The notes: generated by a model not told the origin, from the sequence alone. A DNA stretch of 64,000 nucleotides from Hyaloraphidium curvatum SAG 235-1 (GCA_025558095.1 JAIVFI010000031.1:496001-560000); one strand, 5' to 3'. Numbered from the stretch's first letter, positions 3,359 to 48,828 are shown. Numbers and translations are program-made.

Positions 3359-6300
3359 TCAGCGCTTGCGGTAGTTGCGCGAGAACATGAGGCCGGTCTG
3401 GATGGATACGATCAGCTGGACGCCGGGAGGAAGGAACAGCGGTTCCGAAGCCCACCAGCGACATGAGCGCGAAGAAGACGAAGAGGGCCATGTTCTGCGA
3501 AGGCCGGCGGTCAGGAACCGAAGTCAGCGCGGCTCGAGGCGGGAACTCACGACACCGTAGGCGACGTTGGTGGCGGCCGGGTTCTCGGGCGACACGTCCC
3601 TGTACTTGAGGATGAAGTCCCTGCCCTGGCCGACCGGGCAGTAGTACCCCGGCGGGAACAGGCTTGGGTCGGTGGCGAGCTCGTTGGACACCGTCGACGC
3701 GTTCTGGTACATGGGGAACGCGGCCATGGCGGCGCCGTACTGCGAGGGGTCGGTGAAGTTGGAGGGGCTCGAGGAGATGTTGGCGATCTGGCCCGCGAGG
3801 GCGCCATTGCCGGCAATCAGGGCCTCGCGGACCGCGCCGGCCGAGGCGTCGGTGCCGGCCGAGAAGGCGTTGGAGGACATGATGCGCACGCCCTCCCAGA
3901 AGGCCGAGACCTGCACCGCGTTGCCGGGGTTGCCGACGAAGGTCTTGTTGACGCTGCCGACGAAGCCGTTCGCGACGGGGCCCGCGAAGACGGCGGAGGG
4001 GATGAGCGGACACTGCATGATGTCTGCGATCGGAAGACGAGGTCAAGGAAAGTCATGCATTCGCCCGCGACGTTCGGCTCACAGTTTTCCATGATCTGCC
4101 AAATCTGCGGACGAAGAATAGAGATGAGTCAAACCCTCCCGGCACGCCGCTTCGTGAACTACCCACCACGAACTGCAGGGTCCAGCGCCAGTAGTTGATG
4201 TCCGCGATCCACCTGAGCCCCGGCGAGAGGGTGCCGAGGGCCGCCTGCGTCCCGGAGAAGGCGTAGAAGATGAGGCCGGCGGCCCAGAGGGCCGTGTAGG
4301 TCTGCACGAGGCTCTTGGACCACGCCGACCACGCCTGCGACACGGCGGTCGCGAGCCACATCTGGACGAGCATCATGGGGTAGATCTTGCCGAAGTCGCC
4401 GGTCGCGAAGCCCGCCATGAAGTAGATGATTATGATCTGGATGGTGGTGATGACGACGTTGAACAATCCTCTGCAGAGAGGAGGGAGCGGGTCAGAAGGA
4501 ACGGAGGCACCGATCACGCCACGTCCCACTCGATGATGAGGTAGGTGAGCCAGAAGGGCACCGTGCCGTAGAACGCCGTGTCGAGCTCCTGCAGGTACAG
4601 CTCGCGGTCCTCGAGGAACTGCGGCACGGCGGCGACGGCGACGAAGATGGGAAGGAAACCGAAGGTCGACGTCACCGACAGGCGGTTGCGGATTCCCTGC
4701 ACGTCGTTTTGCAGCTGGATGGGCGAGCCAGGTGAGCGACGAGCATTCGATGAGGCGGCAAGAAGCTCACGTTGTAGAACAGGCCGCCAAAGAGCAGACC
4801 GAGGGCCGTGAACATGAAGAGCCTGCCCCACGAGGTCGACGGGTTGCGCCAGTAGCGCAGCAGGCAGCGGTGGCCGACGAGGGCGATCTGGTTGTACCAC
4901 GGCCGCTCGACGATGTACCTGGAGTAACGCACGGATCCGTACTGCTGCGCCCTGAGCCGGTGGATCTCGTCCATGTTGGCGGCGGCGAGCGGCGAGCGGT
5001 CGTAGTACTGTGAGGCGGCGAGGGCGTTGGCGGAGATGACATCGACTGCAAATCAAATGCGAGTGTCAGAAGAGCGGGCGCGGATCAGGAGGCAAGCGAC
5101 CCACGGTAGTGTTCAATCGGGTTCTGCAGCCTCGGCGTCGGGTAGCCCATCGTCGTAAAGTACGACTCGGCGGCGGCGACGGGTCCAAAATAGCAGGTCC
5201 GACCCTCGCAGATGAGCAGCGTGTTGTCGAAGAGCCTGAAGACCGACTCGGCAGGCTGGTGGATCACGATGACCTGTAGGAACATCGAGGTGAATAAGGT
5301 GACGGAGATGCTTCCGTGCAGCGCAGACGACTCACGACGCAGACGTTCTCCGCTTTGACGTACTTGAGCACGAGCTCCATGGTAAAGCGAGCTCCGAAGT
5401 CGTCGAGACCGCTGCAGGCAAGGCCGCGGTGAGCGAGTTCCGTTCGAGACCGTGGTCAAGTATGAACGCACGAAGTCGGCTCGTCCAAGAACAGCATCTT
5501 GGGCCGGGCAATCATCTCGGTGGCGACCTCGGTGCGCTTCTTCTCGCCGGAGGAGACACCGCGAATGAGCTCGTCGCCGACGGGCGTGTTCTGGGCGTTG
5601 GTGAGCTTGAGGCCGGCGATGACGTCGTCGACGCGGGCGATGCGCTCCTCCTTGGTCGAATGTCTCGGCATGCGGCACTCGGCGGCGAACATGAGCGTCT
5701 CGCGCACGGTCATGGTCGGGATGTGGGCCATCATGGTGGTGATCTGGCCCAGGCGGCGCTTGAAGAAGATGTCGGGCTTCTGGCCGTTGACGAGGATCTC
5801 GCCGGTGACATCGCCGAGGGACTTGCGCTGCGACAGGATATCTGGCAGGCGGCGGCGGCGGTAAGCATGCGAGAACGCGAAATGCGAGAAGAGGAGTGGG
5901 ACGCCGGCACCATTCGACGTTCCCATGCCTTCGAGCTCCTCGCAGCCGTTCAGGGCTTTCGCCATCGCCCGCTGCAGCAACTCCCGCATCGTGCCGCCAA
6001 GATGTGCGGACGCGCCCCTCCGGCCGGATCCCGAGCCGGCGATGCCGCGGCCCTCGAATGCTCACCGAGCAGCGTGGTTTTGCCGGCGCCCGACGGGCCG
6101 ATGATGGCGAGCGACTCGCCGGGCCGTGCGAAGCCGGTCGAATCGATGAGCGAGTGCACGACCTTCTTGGTGCCGAACAGGCCGCTGGACTTGAGGCGAC
6201 AGTTCACGTCCGTCCATGTGACCTGAGGGGAGCAGGAAGGCTCGGAGCCGCCGCGGAAATAGCTGCGTGCCGAGCTCACGGTGTAGCCCTGGTGCTCGTC

Positions 6301-6360
6301 GGCCATCGCCTCGGCGGAGTAGCGCGCTTCGGCCGCAGCCTGTGCCTTGGCGTCGGTCAT
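3359..6360 (-). CDS. ABCG (White-type) half transporter, NBD-TMD, multi-exon
   Basis: Walker A GPSGAGKTT, signature VSSGEKKR, Walker B MLFLDEPTS, H-loop IHQP, TMD with YWRNP and FLEDRELYLQE. Last exon ends FSRNYRKR* at 3359. Start MTDAKAQ at 6360. Confidence 0.9.
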
Positions 6361-6628
6361 CTTTGGCGGTCTGCTCAACTGCTTCCGCGCTTCGTGGACT
6401 GCGTCTGGTGCTTCTTTGGCTGTTTCCGTGGCGAGCGGCGAAAGCACGGCGCTTTTCCTGCTCAGGATGGGGTGTGCGGAAATGGCTTCTTTTCCGCGAG
6501 TGAATCGAAGCGGGGGGTGCTGACGTGGCCCTTTGCCACGTACCCCCATCCCGGTTGCGGAATCCGGCCCGCAAAACCGGCAGACTCCGCTCCAAACCGC
6601 ACCGCCTGCTCGGAAACAACCCGTCGCA
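6361..6628. promoter_or_regulatory. Putative bidirectional promoter and 5' UTRs shared by two ABCG genes
   Basis: 268 bp between the divergent start codons at 6360 (-) and 6629 (+). Inferred from geometry only. Confidence 0.55.
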
Positions 6629-9463
6629 ATGGAGGCCAAGCCGCAGTCGGGCGAGATCGCCACGGGCGAGACGTCCATCGTCCTCCCCAAGGCCGGCGAG
6701 AAGATCTCCCGGCTCGAGTCCTGGGCCGTCACGGACCCGAACCAGTTGAACCCGGCCTTCTTCTCGTTCAAGGACATCAGTTGCGTGCTCAAATCCGATG
6801 GCAAGCCGAAGGTCCTGCTCGACATGGTCTCGGGCTACTGCAAGGTGCGCGACACCGTGCCGGCGCGGCGACACGCGTGACCGTGTCCCCCACCGCAGCC
6901 GGGCGAGACTCTGGCGATCATGGGGCCCTCGGGCGCCGGCAAGTCCACCCTGCTCGACATCCTGGCCTTCCGCAAGACCACCGGGAAATGGACCCAGGAC
7001 ATCCGGCTCAACGGCGCCCTTCTGTCCAAGCGCACCTTCGTCAAGGAGTCTGGCTACGTGACTTCGGACGACTTGCTCACTCCCGAGCTCACCTGCCGCG
7101 AAATGCTCAAGTTCGGTGCCGCGCTCCGCCTTCCGCGCAACTACAGCGAGGCTCAGCGCAACTCGCGGGTGCGTCTTGACGCCTCCGCATCTCCGGCTCA
7201 ACTGATCGTTATCTCGCAGATCAACGACGTGCTCGAAGTCATGCGCCTCGGCTACTGCGAGCACCGCAGGATCGGCGGCGCGCTGCAACGCGGCCTGTCC
7301 ACCGGCGAGCGCAAGCGCCTCAACGTCGCCATGGAGCTGCTCCCCGTCGCCTCGGTGCTCTTCCTCGACGAGCCCACGACCGGCCTCGACTCCAACACCG
7401 GCCGCGAGATCATCGCCAACGTCGTCGAGGTTACCCGCCTGCGCAAGCTCGCCTGCGTCGCCACGATCCACCAGCCGTCGTACACCATCCTGTCGCAGTT
7501 CGACTACCTGCTCGCGCTCGCCAAGGGCAAGCTCTGCTACTACGGCCGCATCGCCGACGCCATCCTGTACTTCGAGAACCTGGGAATCTCCATCGCGGGC
7601 AACCCTGGTAAGGATGCTGCTTTTCCCTTGCGGTCGCAGCATTCTGATTCGCTTCTGGACATCTCCAGCCGAGATCTACGCCACCGCCTTGGCCGCCGAG
7701 CCCGATCGTCTTGCGGATGCGTGGGAGAGCTCGCCCGAACGCACCATTCTTCAGAAGAAGGTCGAGGCGATCCACTCCGGCCAGGGCTCCATCAACGACG
7801 TCGTCGCCAAGGCCGACGAGACCCCGACCCTCTTGGACCGGCTCGGATTCTACCACCAGGCTCCCATTTGGACCCAGTTCTGGCAGCTTCTCTACAGGCA
7901 GATCCTCGTCTACCTCCGCAACCCGATCATGTCGACTTCGCGCTTCCTTGCCGCCATCTTTACCGCCCTCTTCTTCGGAGGCGCATTCTGGCAGCTCAAG
8001 CGCACGGCGTGTGGGTGTTCGATTGTTTTGATGCTCGCCTTTCCTCACCACGTTGCTTGCAGCCGGTTACGATGCCCGCTGCGCCGAGGCTTTTGCATTC
8101 AAGCTCATGGTTCCCGGCTACGGCTCCGCTGCCATCGCGTACTGGCTCGAGAAGCGCAAGCAGTACTACCACGAGGAGGCCGCCGGCTACTACCACCGTC
8201 TCGGCCATCTTCTGGTGATGTTCTTTGTCGAGTGGATCTTCTTGTCGGCCATCATGGTGAGTCGCTGTGCTTTTGTCGACCTGCCGCCAAGCCTGGCATG
8301 CTCACTTGATTGCCGCAGACCGTCGTCGCGGCCATCATGTTCCCCATGTCGGGCTGGGTTACCAGCAACATCGGCAGGTACATCGGCTACATGATCTGCG
8401 AAGCGTTCTCGTCGACGGGCTTGAATCTCGTGTGCGCGTACACCGCGGCCTCGATCCCGTACGCCAACGCTATGTTCACGCTGCACTACTTCTACGGCAT
8501 TCTCCTCGGCGGCTACTACATCACTGATGTCTTCCTGTTCACGCGTCATCAGTCGGTCAGGGCTTTCTGGCAGTGGTTCTCGTGAGTTTCATCTTCCCGC
8601 GGTCTTCTGGATCGCATGCCTAACCGCATGCATCGGCCGCAGGTACGACCGCCTGTGGTTCATTCCCACCATCCGCGACGAGCTCTACGGCTACCCGCTG
8701 ACTTGCACCGAGATCGAGAAGTTCCCGTTCGACATCACCGGCATATCGAACCGCGGCATCGGCGGTGCGGCCAAGAACCTCACGACGCAGGCCGTCGCTG
8801 CCAACCCCAGCCTCGTGGCGGCCATGAACTCGTTCGACATCTGGCAGAACGCCAACGCCGACGTCAACGCCACTGTGCTCTCGCTCTACCGGACCGCCAA
8901 CGCCTTCCAGGCTCTGCAAACCTCGCGCAACTTTGCTCAGGCTACTCAGCAGCCGGCCAACGTCGTCGACAGTCTCAACACCCAGGTTGCTGCTGCGCGG
9001 ACCGCCTTTGCTTCGGCCGTCGGCCTGCCGCCCACCAGCGACGCCGTTTCGACCGCTCTCAACCAGACCATCAGGGCCGCCAGCATGTTCGGCTTCTCCA
9101 ACTACCTGGTCGCCAACCCGCTGCCGTCGGTGCTGACCTGCTTCTACGCGGATGGGGAGGCCTACATCGAGAACGCGCTGGCCTTGTGAGTGACTTTCGC
9201 TGTTCGCAAGCCGGAGTTGGTACTGATCGGTTTCGGCAGGGAATGGGTCTTCCGGAACCCGCAGGGAGCGATTTCCGGTTATGGCATCGACCACTTCAAC
9301 ACGACGTCGACTGGCTTCTACCTCGCTGGTGAGAAGCCGCGTTCGGCCTTCGATCGGGGCAGGTTCTCATTCGTCCAACCCCGCAGTCGCCTTCATCACC
9401 GGCATCGGCTGGACGATCGTCGCTTACTTCGCACTTTGGTTCTGCAACTTCAGGCAGAAGTAG
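6629..9463 (+). CDS. ABCG (White-type) half transporter, NBD-TMD, multi-exon
   Basis: Walker A GPSGAGKST, signature LSTGERKR, Walker B LFLDEPTTGLD, H-loop TIHQP, TMD with YLRNP and EKRKQYYHEE. Ends WFCNFRQK*. Confidence 0.9.
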
Positions 9464-44194: not shown

Positions 44195-47100
44195 CTATGA
44201 AACCATCCTGTGCATCTTGAGCTTTAGCAGGCCGTAGTACACCAACCTCGTGGCCACCGTGATCGCCACTAGCACCCCCAGGTTGACCCCCAGGTTCACG
44301 TCGGCCAGGTCCAGCGTGTTCAGCACCTGCTCCCCCGTGGAGATGATGCAGGTGCCGTTGGGGTAGGCCTGATCGGGGGTGGGGGCGCAGGAGAAGGTGG
44401 CGCCGGTGAACTCGAGGTTGGTGAGGACGGGGATGCCCCAGCGGAGGGGGCTTATGTACTGCGGGTCGAAAGGTCAGGGCCCCGTTGGGCGGGGTTGCGG
44501 GCGCGGAACCCACGTTGATATAGTACAGGAAGGCGGGGATCGACTGCGCGCCGATACCGCTCATCATGATAAACACCGAGTTGATGGCCGAGGCGACGAC
44601 CAGGCCCAGACCGATGTCCTGCGGAGAAAACATCAGATCGGGCGGCGGTTCCCGGTTCCCGCACGCAAGCAACCCACGTCCACGAGGGTGAGGATCGACA
44701 GCCCGATGCTGGTCCCGCAGATGAGGAAGCACGTCGTCACGAGCAGGTTGGCCGCGAACGCCGCGCCGAACCCGATCTGCATCCCCGTCGCCGTGGTCCC
44801 GAGGAGCACCCAGAGCAGCGCGCCGCCGACCATGAAGGGCAGCTGCACGACGAGCTGGGTGAAGGTGAAGGATTCGACGCTTGTGACGCCGTCGGCGTAC
44901 TCCCGCGTGAAGAAGGCACGGTCGGGAGGGTAGTGCGCGGCTGAGCCGAGAAGGCCCATGAAAAGAAGGGAGGGAATGCTGAACGGAAAGTCAGTCTGGT
45001 GGAGAAAGCGCGAGCGTCGGAGACCTTACTTGAATAGCAGGCCCAGAGTCTGCAAGGCGGCAGGTAGGTGAGCGATTGCACAACCACACAGGACCCGAAG
45101 CACCAACGTTCTGCACCGATTCAAAGTTCGCGACACGGATCGAGTTCTGGTAGAAGACGAGGGTGACGAGGGCGAAGCCGCCCGGCATGACGAGAAAGTC
45201 GATCGGTTCGGCGGGTTTCCTGCGGAAGTTGCGCATCGTGCGGGCGTAGAGCACCGGCACGCTCTTGAAGAACGGCGTGCGGTGCTTGATCTCGGCCGTG
45301 TCGACGGCCTTCGCGCTCGCCGGCCCGTCCACCGCCGTTTCGGCAACGGAGCGGGCACCGAACGACTCGGCCGCCGCCACCCGGTACGACTCGACGATCC
45401 CCGCCACGCGGGCGCGGGACTCTGCCTCCGCGGCGTGGTTCCGCAGGTCCACGCTCGATAGGTCGATGACGTAGTCGGCGGGCTGGACGAACTCGGGGAT
45501 GGAGAAGCCGAGGCGTTCGAAAAAGGGGACCATCTCAGTGCGGGGGCCGGCGTAGGCGACCTCGCCGCCGCGGGAGAGCAGGAGCACGTTGTCGAACTGG
45601 TTGAAGGCCTCGGGGCGCGAGGTCTGCTGCGAAGTGAGGATGACTGCGGGCATCGTCGATCATCAGTCACCGACGCCTCGAAGACATTCGCGAGGCGTCA
45701 CCTGTCCTTCCAGTGTCGGCGATCTTGCGCAGCACGGTGATGACGGTCAAGGCTGCGGAGCTGTCCAAGCCCGTAGCCGGTTCGTCGAGGCAGAGCACTG
45801 CGACCTCCTCCTCCAGGATGCCCAGGGCAATGCAGACCCTCCGCTGCTCGCCGCCGCTGATCCCCTTGAGGTTCGCGTCGCCGACGAGGGTATTGGCGCA
45901 ATCCGAGAGGCCGAGAGTGCGGATCACGTTCTCGATGCGCTCGCGGCGCTGCTCCTCCGTCATGTTGTACAGCCGTAACTTGGCCGAGAACATGAGGGTT
46001 TCGCGCACGGTGAGGGTCGGGTAGAGGTTGTCGTTCTCCTTGCGGACGTAGGATGCGTAGCGCACGACGACGCCCGAGCTCGGGTTGCGCACCGTGCCGA
46101 AGCTGACGTTGCCCGTGCGGGCGGTCTTGGTGGACAAGCTCGCGCCAGGCTTGACGTTGCATATCGCGTTGAGCACGCTCGTCTGTGGCGGCTAAGTTAG
46201 AGCCACGAGCGCTTGCGGCGGTCCGTGCAGCCGTACCTTTCCGCTGCCGCCAGAGCCCATAATCACGGTGATCTTGCCGGGCTCGAACGCCATGGTGATG
46301 CTCCGCAGGATCTGCTTGCGCTGCGACTTGAGCGTTATCCCGACCGATTGCACCTCGAGCGCCAGGTTCTCGGCTAGAATGTGGACCTGGTGTTCCTCCG
46401 CCAGCGTGCGGTGGCCGAGGTCCGTGCCGATCTTGACCGCGACCTCCCCGTCGGCTGCAGCACCGTCCTCCCCTTCGAACCGCACCGCGTGCGTCTCGGC
46501 GGCAACGACGCCCGCGGTCACGGGCTCCTTGGTGACAAGCAGCAGGGCGGCGCAGGCGGCCAAAACCCAACCAATGACGGAGGCCGCGCTGAGCCCGATG
46601 AGCGAGGCGAGGTTCGTGTTGGGGTCGAAGCCGAACTGCTGGATGATGATGTCGCCGCTGTATGCCGCGCACTGCGCGTTGCCCGGGGGGTAGGGGCAGT
46701 CCAGCATGCGCCCGCGGTACTGCGAGATGTACATCATCTGGTACGCGTAGTAGGTCGTGACGATGTATCGGGTCCAGGCAATCCAAACGGGCATGGTGGA
46801 GATAACCATATTGAAGCCCATGGCGTAGTTGGGGATCATGGCGAGCGAGTTGGCGGTCACGGACGCCGTGTTGAACTGCCGGGTGAGGGCGACGCACAGG
46901 AAGGCGATGCTCCAGTAGCCGAACACGGTGGAGACCTGCGCGGCAAAGGCCCTGGCACGCAATGTTCATCAGACCACCTGAGGCCCTCGGCAACAGCAAC
47001 GAGAATAACCAACCACCCAAATTGCCCTGCCCGGAGGCCAGCCATGGCGTACACCACACCCGAGTAGATCAACGGGCAGACGACGAAGAACGGAAGATGG

Positions 47101-48828
47101 CACAGCATGCGCGACACGACGTAGCTTCCGACCCCGACCACGCCGTCTACCCGCTCTGCGTCGAAAAGCTGCACGTCCTTGGAGAGAAGGTAGAGGAAGA
47201 GGATCATCTGGCGGGGAGCGGGGTGCATGAGAGCGTCAAACATGCACGAATTCGCGCACACGGCCGCACGAACCATCAGATAGCCCTGCCCCGAAACGCA
47301 AACAAGGATCAGCGTCTGCATCGACCGCACGGATGCGAGGTCGTTGGGCAGCTGGAAGAATATGGCGCCGATGAAGAGTGCAAAGATGGCGGACTCGCCA
47401 AAGATGCCGAACAGGGAGCCCTTGTCTCTCCACGTGTTGCGGTATCCGCGCCGCGTCATGGTGCTCAGCTCGACGAGGAACCTCGCGGCGGGGTTGGAGG
47501 CCGGCACTTGCTGCTCCTGCATGGTGGACTCGCGGTCGGGATGGTCCGATTTGACGTTGGCAGGGATGGCGCCGGCGAGGTCCCGCGCGGCGCGCTCCTT
47601 CCACACCGCGGCGAGCATCTCGAGCCGCTTCTTGCTCGCCTCCTCCGCGGCGGGAGAGCTGTAGTCGACCGACGAGAGGTCCAGGATCCAGTCGGCAATG
47701 TTGGTCTCGGGGTCCATGCGGACGCCGAGGAGGTCCTCGAAGTAGGTCCTGACTTCGGAGGCGGGCTGCGGTGAACGAGATCGGGTCAGAGCGGGCCTAG
47801 GCTTGTTATATGCATTCAGGCTCACCCCAGAGTAGACCAGGTGACCGCCCTTGCAGAGCAGAATCAGGTTGTCGAAGAGTTCAAACGAGCTGTACCGCGG
47901 CTGGTGGACCGAGAGGATCACGGTGCGCCCGTCGTTGGCGATCGTCTTGAGCGTCTGCACGACCGCGGAGGAAGTGAACTGCAGGCAGAACGGTGAGCCT
48001 AAGCCAAATTGAGCGAAAAGCAAACGCTTTGCGCACCGAATCCAGACTGCTCGTGGGCTCGTCGAGCAGGAGGAGAGAAGGCGAGGAGAGCAGCTGGATC
48101 GCGATCGAAACCAGGCGGCGCTCGCCCGACGAGCAGCCGCGGGAGGACGAGCTCGTCGACGAGGGGTTTCCGACCATCGTGTCGGCACACTCCTTCAGGT
48201 TGAGCTCCAAGATCACGTCCTCCACGAGCCTATGCTTCTCCGCCGTCGCCATGCCTGTCGGCAGCCTGAGCTCTGCGTTGTACCGCAGCGTCTCGCGCAC
48301 GGTGAGATACGGCAGCAGCGTATCCTCCTGCCTGACGTAGGCGCAGCGTCCCCCGCGGCCTTTCTTGCGGAGGGGGACCACGTCGACCCCGTTAAACAGG
48401 ATCTGGCCCACAGGCCGGGCGGACCCCGAGAGCCGCGCGGCGATGGCGTTCAGCAGCGTCGTCTTGCCCGCACCGCTCGACCCCATGATCGCGGTGACCT
48501 TGCCCGCGGGTATCGCGGCGCTGACGTTCCGGACGAGGCGCACGGAGTCCCCTGCCGGGGGTGAGGCGGAAGCGGCGCCTGCCTCGAGCTCCACGGCGTC
48601 CGCCGCCCCGGGGCCGGCGGGTTTGGCGGCCTTGGCCTTGCCGTCGAGGCCGAGCTTCTTGGCGATTGCATTCAGCGGGCCCGATTCCCGATCCACGTCC
48701 ACGGAGAGGTCCGCAAGCACGACGGTGGTCGGCGCGACGCGGAACCGCGGCGGGGCGGCCTGGCCCGCGGGCACCGTGGTCGCGGAGGTTTCAGAGGGGC
48801 TGGGCGGCTCGTCCTCGGCAGCGGACAT
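44195..48828 (-). CDS. Full-length ABCG transporter, (NBD-TMD)2, YOL075C-like
   Basis: NBD1: GSSGAGKTT, CSSGERR, LLLLDEPTS, VHQP. NBD2: GSGGSGKTS, ISGGEQRR, LCLDEPAT. Two TMDs (LFDAERVDG, FFTREYADG). Many introns. Confidence 0.9.

Follow-up and report, generated by a model that had tools for sequence, protein, structure and literature searches.

A head-to-head pair of ABCG half-transporter genes, repeatedly co-duplicated in Hyaloraphidium curvatum and conserved in chytrids, probably encodes a heterodimeric exporter

Known ABCG pairs and the Hyaloraphidium curvatum locus

The textbook case of two ABCG halves that must heterodimerize, in their case for exit from the endoplasmic reticulum and sterol transport, is ABCG5/ABCG8, which are encoded by divergent genes. 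A gene pair of the same layout is found in a 64,000-nucleotide stretch of the genome of Hyaloraphidium curvatum SAG 235-1, a monoblepharid chytrid (GCA_025558095.1, JAIVFI010000031.1:496001-560000; hereafter the window, from whose first letter positions are counted). Its two members, here called A and B, each encode an ABCG half-transporter, with a nucleotide-binding domain followed by a transmembrane domain (NBD-TMD). Comparative evidence indicates that they probably form a co-regulated heterodimeric exporter of a previously undescribed ABCG lineage, present in chytrids and in Corallochytrium. A search of the full-text literature found no description of this pair.

Other ABCG halves are known to combine in alternative heterodimers, such as Drosophila White with Scarlet or Brown and plant ABCG11 with ABCG12 and others. 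The genes of these partners are not known to form conserved divergent pairs, and one subunit serves several partners. In Pdr5, Cdr1, and the plant pleiotropic drug resistance (PDR) transporters, the C-terminal halves of which are the best PDB matches of A and B, two non-identical NBD-TMD halves also cooperate. However, in those proteins the halves are fused and one ATP site is degenerate, whereas A and B are two genes; the full-size PDR halves retrieved here are 25 to 31% identical to A and B, and none is specifically A-like or B-like. ABCG2 and ABCG1 have the domain order and length class of A and B, and their extracellular loop 3 (EL3) is likewise a loop with conserved cysteines. Unlike A and B, they retain the Q-loop glutamine and the SGGE signature, have a short EL3, and are encoded by single homodimerizing genes.

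The human ABCG5 and ABCG8 genes are head-to-head with a spacer of 374 bp, and a degenerate Walker A motif in ABCG8 together with a degenerate ISTGE signature in ABCG5 makes one ATP site inactive (PMC6824678). The H. curvatum pair resembles them in consisting of paralogous ABCG halves placed head-to-head across a few hundred base pairs (268 versus 374 bp), in carrying an STGE-type non-consensus signature, and in having the heterodimer as its likely working form. In contrast to ABCG5/ABCG8, neither Walker A motif is degenerate, and the signature and the Q-loop deviate in both halves, so that the two ATP sites look equivalent, both mildly degenerate instead of one being dead. Each half also carries an extracellular helical insert of ~160 to 180 aa, which would give a large two-part extracellular domain, and the pair has been multiplied up to 14-fold. 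If the heterodimer is real, A/B would be a second, independently evolved case of the ABCG5/ABCG8 kind, conserved across chytrid classes.

Gene models and layout of the pair

The region has a GC content of 59 to 70%, and its genes contain short GT-AG introns. The spliced models of the pair are as follows.

3359..6360, minus strand: gene A, A-type ABCG half-transporter (NBD-TMD), 12 exons, 729 aa
6360-6280, 6222-6066, 5841-5472, 5411-5336, 5273-5105, 5045-4771, minus strand: gene A, exons 1-6
4714-4530, 4470-4167, 4104-4083, 4023-3551, 3494-3456, 3397-3359, minus strand: gene A, exons 7-12
6361..6628, no strand: divergent intergenic spacer, 268 bp between the ATGs at 6360 (A) and 6629 (B)
6629..9463, plus strand: gene B, B-type ABCG half-transporter (NBD-TMD), 9 exons, 793 aa
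6629-6844, 6899-7168, 7220-7607, 7669-8010, 8063-8256, plus strand: gene B, exons 1-5
8319-8581, 8643-9185, 9240-9328, 9387-9463, plus strand: gene B, exons 6-9

In the 12-exon model of gene A, the introns are GT-AG and 56 to 62 nt long, with one of 224 nt, and the spliced translation exactly matches the NCBI protein P0002 (729 aa). The 9-exon model of gene B has introns of 51 to 62 nt, and its product is 82% identical over 785 aa to the annotated paralogue P0273, in an alignment interrupted by 1 gap. The deposited model of gene B, P0284 (window 6920-8218), has only 425 of the 793 aa of the complete protein: it starts at an internal ATG at 6920 and is truncated by read-through of intron 4 into a stop. 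The present models correct this public record and also that of a Synchytrium microbalum B gene, which had been split into two models.

The initial annotation had described two NBD-TMD ABCG half-transporters on opposite strands, with starts 268 bp apart, that were too divergent for a recent duplication yet alike at their ends. The spliced models and Pfam matches bear this out. The two proteins are 30.7% identical over 489 residues, which indicates ancient paralogues, and their translations end in NYRKR (A) and NFRQK (B) directly before the stop codon.

The 268-bp spacer is presumed to be a bidirectional promoter. The spacers of the three closest paralogous pairs give no meaningful alignment and are not conserved among pairs. 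A scan for sigma-70 promoters and terminators, the models of which are not applicable to a eukaryote, found nothing.

Duplication of the pair as a unit

When the whole assembly was searched in six frames, the B NBD and an A exon as queries identified 14 loci, each with an A-type and a B-type gene head-to-head, 0.25 to 1.3 kb apart. These pairs are found on the following contigs.

C5 (two loci), C9, C10, C12, C16, and C18
C31 (two loci, one of them in the window), C32, C33, C35, C36, and C40

Trees of the A and B copies, based on exon-anchored alignments, share 8 of 8 splits for the 11 distinct ingroup copies (Robinson-Foulds distance 0), a congruence with P <= 5e-5 in 20,000 label permutations. 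The sole difference between the two trees is the attachment of the long-branched pairs on C18 and C40, and the A and B distance matrices correlate with r = 0.98-0.99. The identical ingroup topology suggests, therefore, that the pair duplicates as a unit. Judging from these sequences, it has done so at least 13 times, and all 14 pairs retain both members without loss or degradation, although protein divergence among pairs reaches ~60%.

This divergence is unevenly distributed along both proteins, as seen in the mean protein divergence among 12 ingroup copies.

NBD: 10-11%
Membrane domain: 26-31%
Extracellular loop between transmembrane segments 5 and 6 (TM5 and TM6): 48-53% (A insert 52%, B insert 48%)

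The inserts are thus the most divergent region of both A and B among the paralogues. In seven paralogue-pair comparisons, the pairwise ratio of nonsynonymous to synonymous substitution rates (dN/dS) is 0.00 to 0.28 in the NBD, 0.09 to 0.39 in the TMD, and 0.05 to 0.72 in the loop. These low values indicate that both partners are under purifying selection and hence are functional genes; the loop appears to be under relaxed or diversifying pressure. The synonymous rate itself is lower in NBD exons (~0.1 to 0.4; window exons 5474-5839 and 7220-7606) than in loop exons (~0.2 to 0.9; 3551-4021 and 8644-9183), which hints at gene conversion among the NBDs or at stronger codon constraint.

Several features of the individual copies deserve mention. 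Two pairs on C5 (C5:572567-580367 and C5:588726-596426) are protein-identical and mutually inverted, ~15 kb apart, and either arose by inverted duplication very recently or reflect an assembly effect. The paralogues differ in their introns; for example, B intron 2 is missing in the C35, C9, C5, and C36 copies, and the A gene on C40 (minus strand) is intronless over 710 codons. In addition, the genome contains four orphan fragments, two of them A-like (C39:265500-274000 and C21:456500-465000, the latter with an in-frame stop) and two B-like (C27:446500-455000 and C34:394500-403000). No partner was detected within the fetched stretches; the fragments probably derive from copies of the pair that have decayed.

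Relatives in other species

Relatives were collected by an exhaustive profile search with B-type NBDs and by word searches with a Synchytrium B protein and the window A protein. Both types are found in Gonapodya prolifera, Gonapodya sp. JEL0774, Synchytrium microbalum, Zopfochytrium polystomum, Chytridiales sp. JEL0842, Blyttiomyces sp., Irineochytrium annulatum, Dinochytrium kinnereticum, Phlyctochytrium planicorne, and Chytridium lagenaria, as well as in the holozoan Corallochytrium limacisporum. The sole exception to the co-occurrence of A and B is Phlyctochytrium bullatum, in which only the A type was found and no B matched. The A:B copy numbers are 14:14, 6:6, 2:2, or 1:1 across nearly all species examined.

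Synteny in related zoosporic fungi, which had been proposed as a check of the pairing, is indeed found: four other species have the head-to-head order at 7 loci, with spacers of 246 to 1625 bp.

Synchytrium microbalum: g00983/g00984, g04082/g04083, and g04537 with the split B gene
Gonapodya prolifera: both of its pairs
Zopfochytrium: one locus
Chytridiales sp. JEL0842: one locus

According to tblastn searches and protein identifiers, the partners at these loci are A-type. Consecutive gene numbers imply three more pairs in S. microbalum, for a total of six. In Blyttiomyces, the contig ends 279 bp upstream of B. Taken with the H. curvatum data, the comparison indicates that in Chytridiomycota the A/B unit is old, has been conserved, and has been co-duplicated repeatedly.

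Two gene models at these loci are aberrant. The S. microbalum B gene next to g04537 (QEAO01000031.1) is annotated as two genes, of 344 aa with an ABC_tran domain and of 399 aa with an ABC2_membrane domain, and in JEL0842 the annotation joins the B gene to a RasGEF protein in a 1756-aa fusion, probably because gene models were merged. The B genes of Dinochytrium and P. planicorne, which are not linked to A, have common downstream neighbors (a DEAD_2 helicase, WAPL, and Pex16), and therefore the unlinked state appears to be inherited within that group. Full-size (NBD-TMD)2 proteins among the top matches were considered as possible A-B fusions and rejected, their halves being 25 to 31% identical to both A and B; such proteins rank high in the profile search because their two NBDs add up.

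Phylogeny and relation to ABCG5/ABCG8

A phylogeny of 72 rows and 608 columns was inferred with IQ-TREE (LG+C20 with posterior mean site frequencies, quick search). The outgroups were plant halves of the WBC (white-brown complex) type, halves of full-size proteins (PDR and dictyostelid), proteins from oomycetes and amoebozoans, and one eel protein; no ABCG5 sequence was included. Shimodaira-Hasegawa-like approximate likelihood ratio (SH-aLRT) support is 100 for the A clade, for the B clade, and for A+B, A and B being sister clades. A Corallochytrium protein lies at the base of either clade, and the same two chytrid subclades are mirrored in both. The arrangement predates the split of these subclades, as each of them includes head-to-head loci.

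The eel protein, P0094, is an ABCG8 orthologue (922 bits versus human ABCG8), and it falls outside A+B, as does every other outgroup. Moreover, in PDB searches both A and B score higher with Cdr1/Pdr5 and ABCG2 than with ABCG8 or ABCG5. The position of ABCG8 implies that A/B is not an orthologue of ABCG5/ABCG8 and that the likeness in layout is convergent. The initial annotation had left open whether the arrangement was ancient or convergent and had called for an ABCG phylogeny. As far as sequence comparison goes, the answer appears to be both: A/B forms a lineage of its own, with an arrangement that is ancient within chytrids and independent of ABCG5/ABCG8, a comparison represented in the tree by ABCG8 and not by ABCG5.

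Family assignment and ATP-site motifs

In both genes, Pfam searches with the exons show an N-terminal ABC_tran domain (PF00005) followed by ABC2_membrane domains (PF01061 and PF19055), the reverse topology of ABCG proteins, and PDB searches with A and B matched only ABCG proteins. Gene A scores 265 to 281 bits with the C-terminal halves of Cdr1/Pdr5, 232 with ABCG2, 181 with ABCG8, and 175 with AtABCG25; the gene B NBD scores 139 to 150 bits with Cdr1/Pdr5, AtABCG25, and ABCG2. The best NCBIfam model for both is TIGR00955 (pigment precursor permease/White subfamily), but the scores of P0002 (302 bits) and of the B NBD (206 bits) do not reach its cut-off of 736 bits. The ATP-site motifs of the two window genes are as follows.

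6073..6099, minus strand: gene A, Walker A GPSGAGKTT, consensus
5705..5749, minus strand: gene A, Q-loop region GQITTMMAHIPTMTV, conserved glutamine absent (motif table of 69 ABCG halves)
5534..5560, minus strand: gene A, signature GVSSGEKKR, with SSGE replacing SGGE/Q
6923..6949, plus strand: gene B, Walker A GPSGAGKST, consensus
7052..7093, plus strand: gene B, Q-loop region GYVTSDDLLTPELT, Ser at the glutamine position (aligned to GFVAQDDLL of AtABCG25)
7292..7318, plus strand: gene B, signature GLSTGERKR, with STGE, a deviation shared with ABCG5

The table of 69 ABCG halves includes 42 A/B-type sequences with the aligned region. Both types, the Corallochytrium members included, conform to the consensus at Walker A, Walker B (D-E), and the H-loop His. 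The Q-loop Gln is missing in all 42 aligned A/B-type sequences, with GYVTSDD in B and a variable sequence in A, and the signature reads SSGE in A and STGE in B, again in 42 of 42. Among the outgroup halves, the Q-loop Gln is present in nearly all and an SGG signature in most. The A and B types therefore have in common a derived Q-loop and a derived signature. The catalytic asymmetry of ABCG5/ABCG8 is not seen, as both Walker A motifs are consensus whereas both signatures and both Q-loops deviate. The two composite ATP sites thus deviate alike, which argues against any built-in catalytic asymmetry.

Extracellular inserts and the membrane-domain interface

The most divergent region of both proteins is encoded by one exon in each gene.

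3551..4023, minus strand: gene A, exon for the large extracellular insert between TM5 and TM6, ~160 aa
8643..9185, plus strand: gene B, exon for the large extracellular insert between TM5 and TM6, ~180 aa

AlphaFold2 models of the A insert (P0002:532-716) and the B insert (window exon 8644-9183) are helical bundles with a mean predicted local distance difference test score (pLDDT) of 86.4 and 87.8, respectively, and conserved cysteines bracket both inserts. Foldseek searches of the PDB with either insert gave no significant fold match, only generic helical bundles with E >= 0.15.

The membrane domains of the closest paralogous pair, on C33 (P0377:320-718 with P0273:372-812), were modeled as a complex. 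This model has an ipSAE interface score of 0.70, versus 0.00 for the best of 3 controls; its runs agree in >= 55% of contacts, and the partner pLDDT is >= 67. Among microbial proteins, 51 of 78 solved complexes attain the mark that it passes, as do 2 of 108 mismatched pairs; among eukaryotic proteins, 39 of 65 solved pairs that lack a like complex in older structures attain it, as do 2 of 126 unrelated pairs. The contacts predicted with confidence link TM1/TM2 of one chain to the TM5 region of the other, an interface like that in solved ABCG dimers, and the loops take part in few of them. The predicted complex thus supports an ABCG-type dimer of the membrane domains.

A heterodimer and its alternatives

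Co-occurrence, conserved gene order, and 14 co-duplicated pairs make up the comparative signature expected of a co-expressed heterodimer. On this comparative evidence, the A/B heterodimer is well supported, although unproven. In the proposed mechanism, the spacer would act as a bidirectional promoter that delivers A and B together, the two proteins would pair via the usual ABCG TM2/TM5 interface, and the two ATP sites of their dimer would be equivalent and non-canonical. A cap would be formed by the extracellular bundles of both halves; this being the fastest-evolving part, it would probably determine, for each of the 14 paralogous pumps, what is released or encountered outside the cell. The candidate obligate heterodimer of the initial annotation gains from the co-duplication, the conserved head-to-head order, and the confident membrane-domain interface, but the degenerate-site hallmark of ABCG5/ABCG8 is missing.

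Several observations weigh against a heterodimer. Both halves have complete catalytic motifs, so neither should need its partner for ATP hydrolysis as ABCG8 needs ABCG5. A and B are unlinked in three Chytridiales, Dinochytrium, P. planicorne, and Irineochytrium, where B has no ABC neighbor and A is on another contig, both types being retained; Irineochytrium also has 2 B genes versus 1 A. The shared history of segment-duplicated genes alone gives mirrored trees, so the tree congruence reflects linkage, not contact. The test of the modeled complex cannot separate a heterodimer from homodimers, and its pass may echo the solved structures, which include ABCG dimers. Some of these points fit A and B being separate homodimers that are adjacent only for shared regulation, for instance as two pumps required in the same situation, as does the fact that ABCG2 and ABCG1 act as homodimers (PDB entries): with consensus Walker A, Walker B, and H-loop motifs in both halves there is no asymmetry forcing a partnership, and linkage is dispensable in the three species named. 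We consider this rather unlikely, as the two types co-occur in near-equal numbers nearly everywhere, the 1 A and 2 B genes of Irineochytrium aside, each duplication has carried both genes without the loss of a member in any of the 14 pairs, and shared regulation alone rarely keeps a divergent pair together across chytrid classes.

Two other explanations of the layout fare worse than separate homodimers. Inheritance from an opisthokont ancestor, which would make the pair a fungal orthologue of the animal ABCG5/ABCG8 sterol exporter, would account for the short head-to-head spacer (268 bp versus 374 bp in human; PMC6824678), for the STGE deviation that B shares with ABCG5, and for the presence of both types in the holozoan Corallochytrium. 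It is nevertheless very improbable, given the position of the eel ABCG8 outside A+B (SH-aLRT 100, in a tree without ABCG5), the better scores of A and B with Cdr1/Pdr5 and ABCG2 than with ABCG8/ABCG5, the consensus Walker A motifs, and the deviation of both signatures instead of one; the names of the two Corallochytrium genes also indicate different scaffolds. That the adjacency is a functionally meaningless accident of recent segmental duplication or assembly might be suggested by the identical or near-identical copies, namely the inverted repeat on C5 and the C9 and C36 pairs, which closely resemble it in sequence. This has next to no chance of being correct, as it is contradicted by the cross-species synteny, the order being kept in other genera and classes. 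In addition, the C18 and C40 pairs keep the same order at 40 to 60% identity, and dN/dS is well below 1.

A broader version of the heterodimer reading is possible but doubtful. The A/B clade might represent an undescribed lineage of obligate heterodimers, at least as old as crown chytrids, with equally non-canonical ATP sites, a shared cap, pairwise co-evolution of the partners, and pair-specific tuning; if the Corallochytrium members are vertically inherited, it could possibly date back to the opisthokont ancestor. If so, the 14 pairs, with a cap divergence of ~50% versus ~10% in the NBD, would mark a diversified family of surface-facing exporters, each pair being specialized for a substrate, an acceptor, or an environmental challenge of its own. 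The 14 pairs of H. curvatum and 6 of S. microbalum are natural replicates with which partner choice, bidirectional co-regulation, and NBD degeneracy can be tested comparatively.

Neighboring genes

Gene A adjoins a betaine-lipid synthase-like gene at 215-2400 on the minus strand, with the DUF3419 exon at 215-910. A plus-strand open reading frame at 1165-2805 (546 aa) is antisense to this gene, has no Pfam match, and appears to be spurious. A genome search with the DUF3419 exon shows that the synthase-like gene is single-copy. It is flanked by both C31 pairs, the second of which lies just upstream of the window, and the other 12 of the 14 pairs lack it. The adjacency to a synthase of diacylglyceryltrimethylhomoserine (DGTS) lipids, on which the initial annotation had remarked, thus holds for a synthase-like gene; a functional link is not supported for a single-copy gene that borders only 2 of 14 pairs.

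In other species, the genes that adjoin the loci show no relation from one locus to the next. Neighbors of the pair in S. microbalum include a glycolipid transfer protein and two P450s, and an ERG4/ERG24 reductase is encoded near an Irineochytrium B gene. Such lipid-related neighbors are anecdotal and inconsistent across loci. The proposed role in lipid or sterol export is not borne out, as there is no indication that the substrate is a sterol or a lipid.

The window also contains another ABC gene, at ~45778-48504 on the minus strand (C31:541778-544504), with ABC ATPase-like matches of 39 to 44% identity to the A and B NBD exons.

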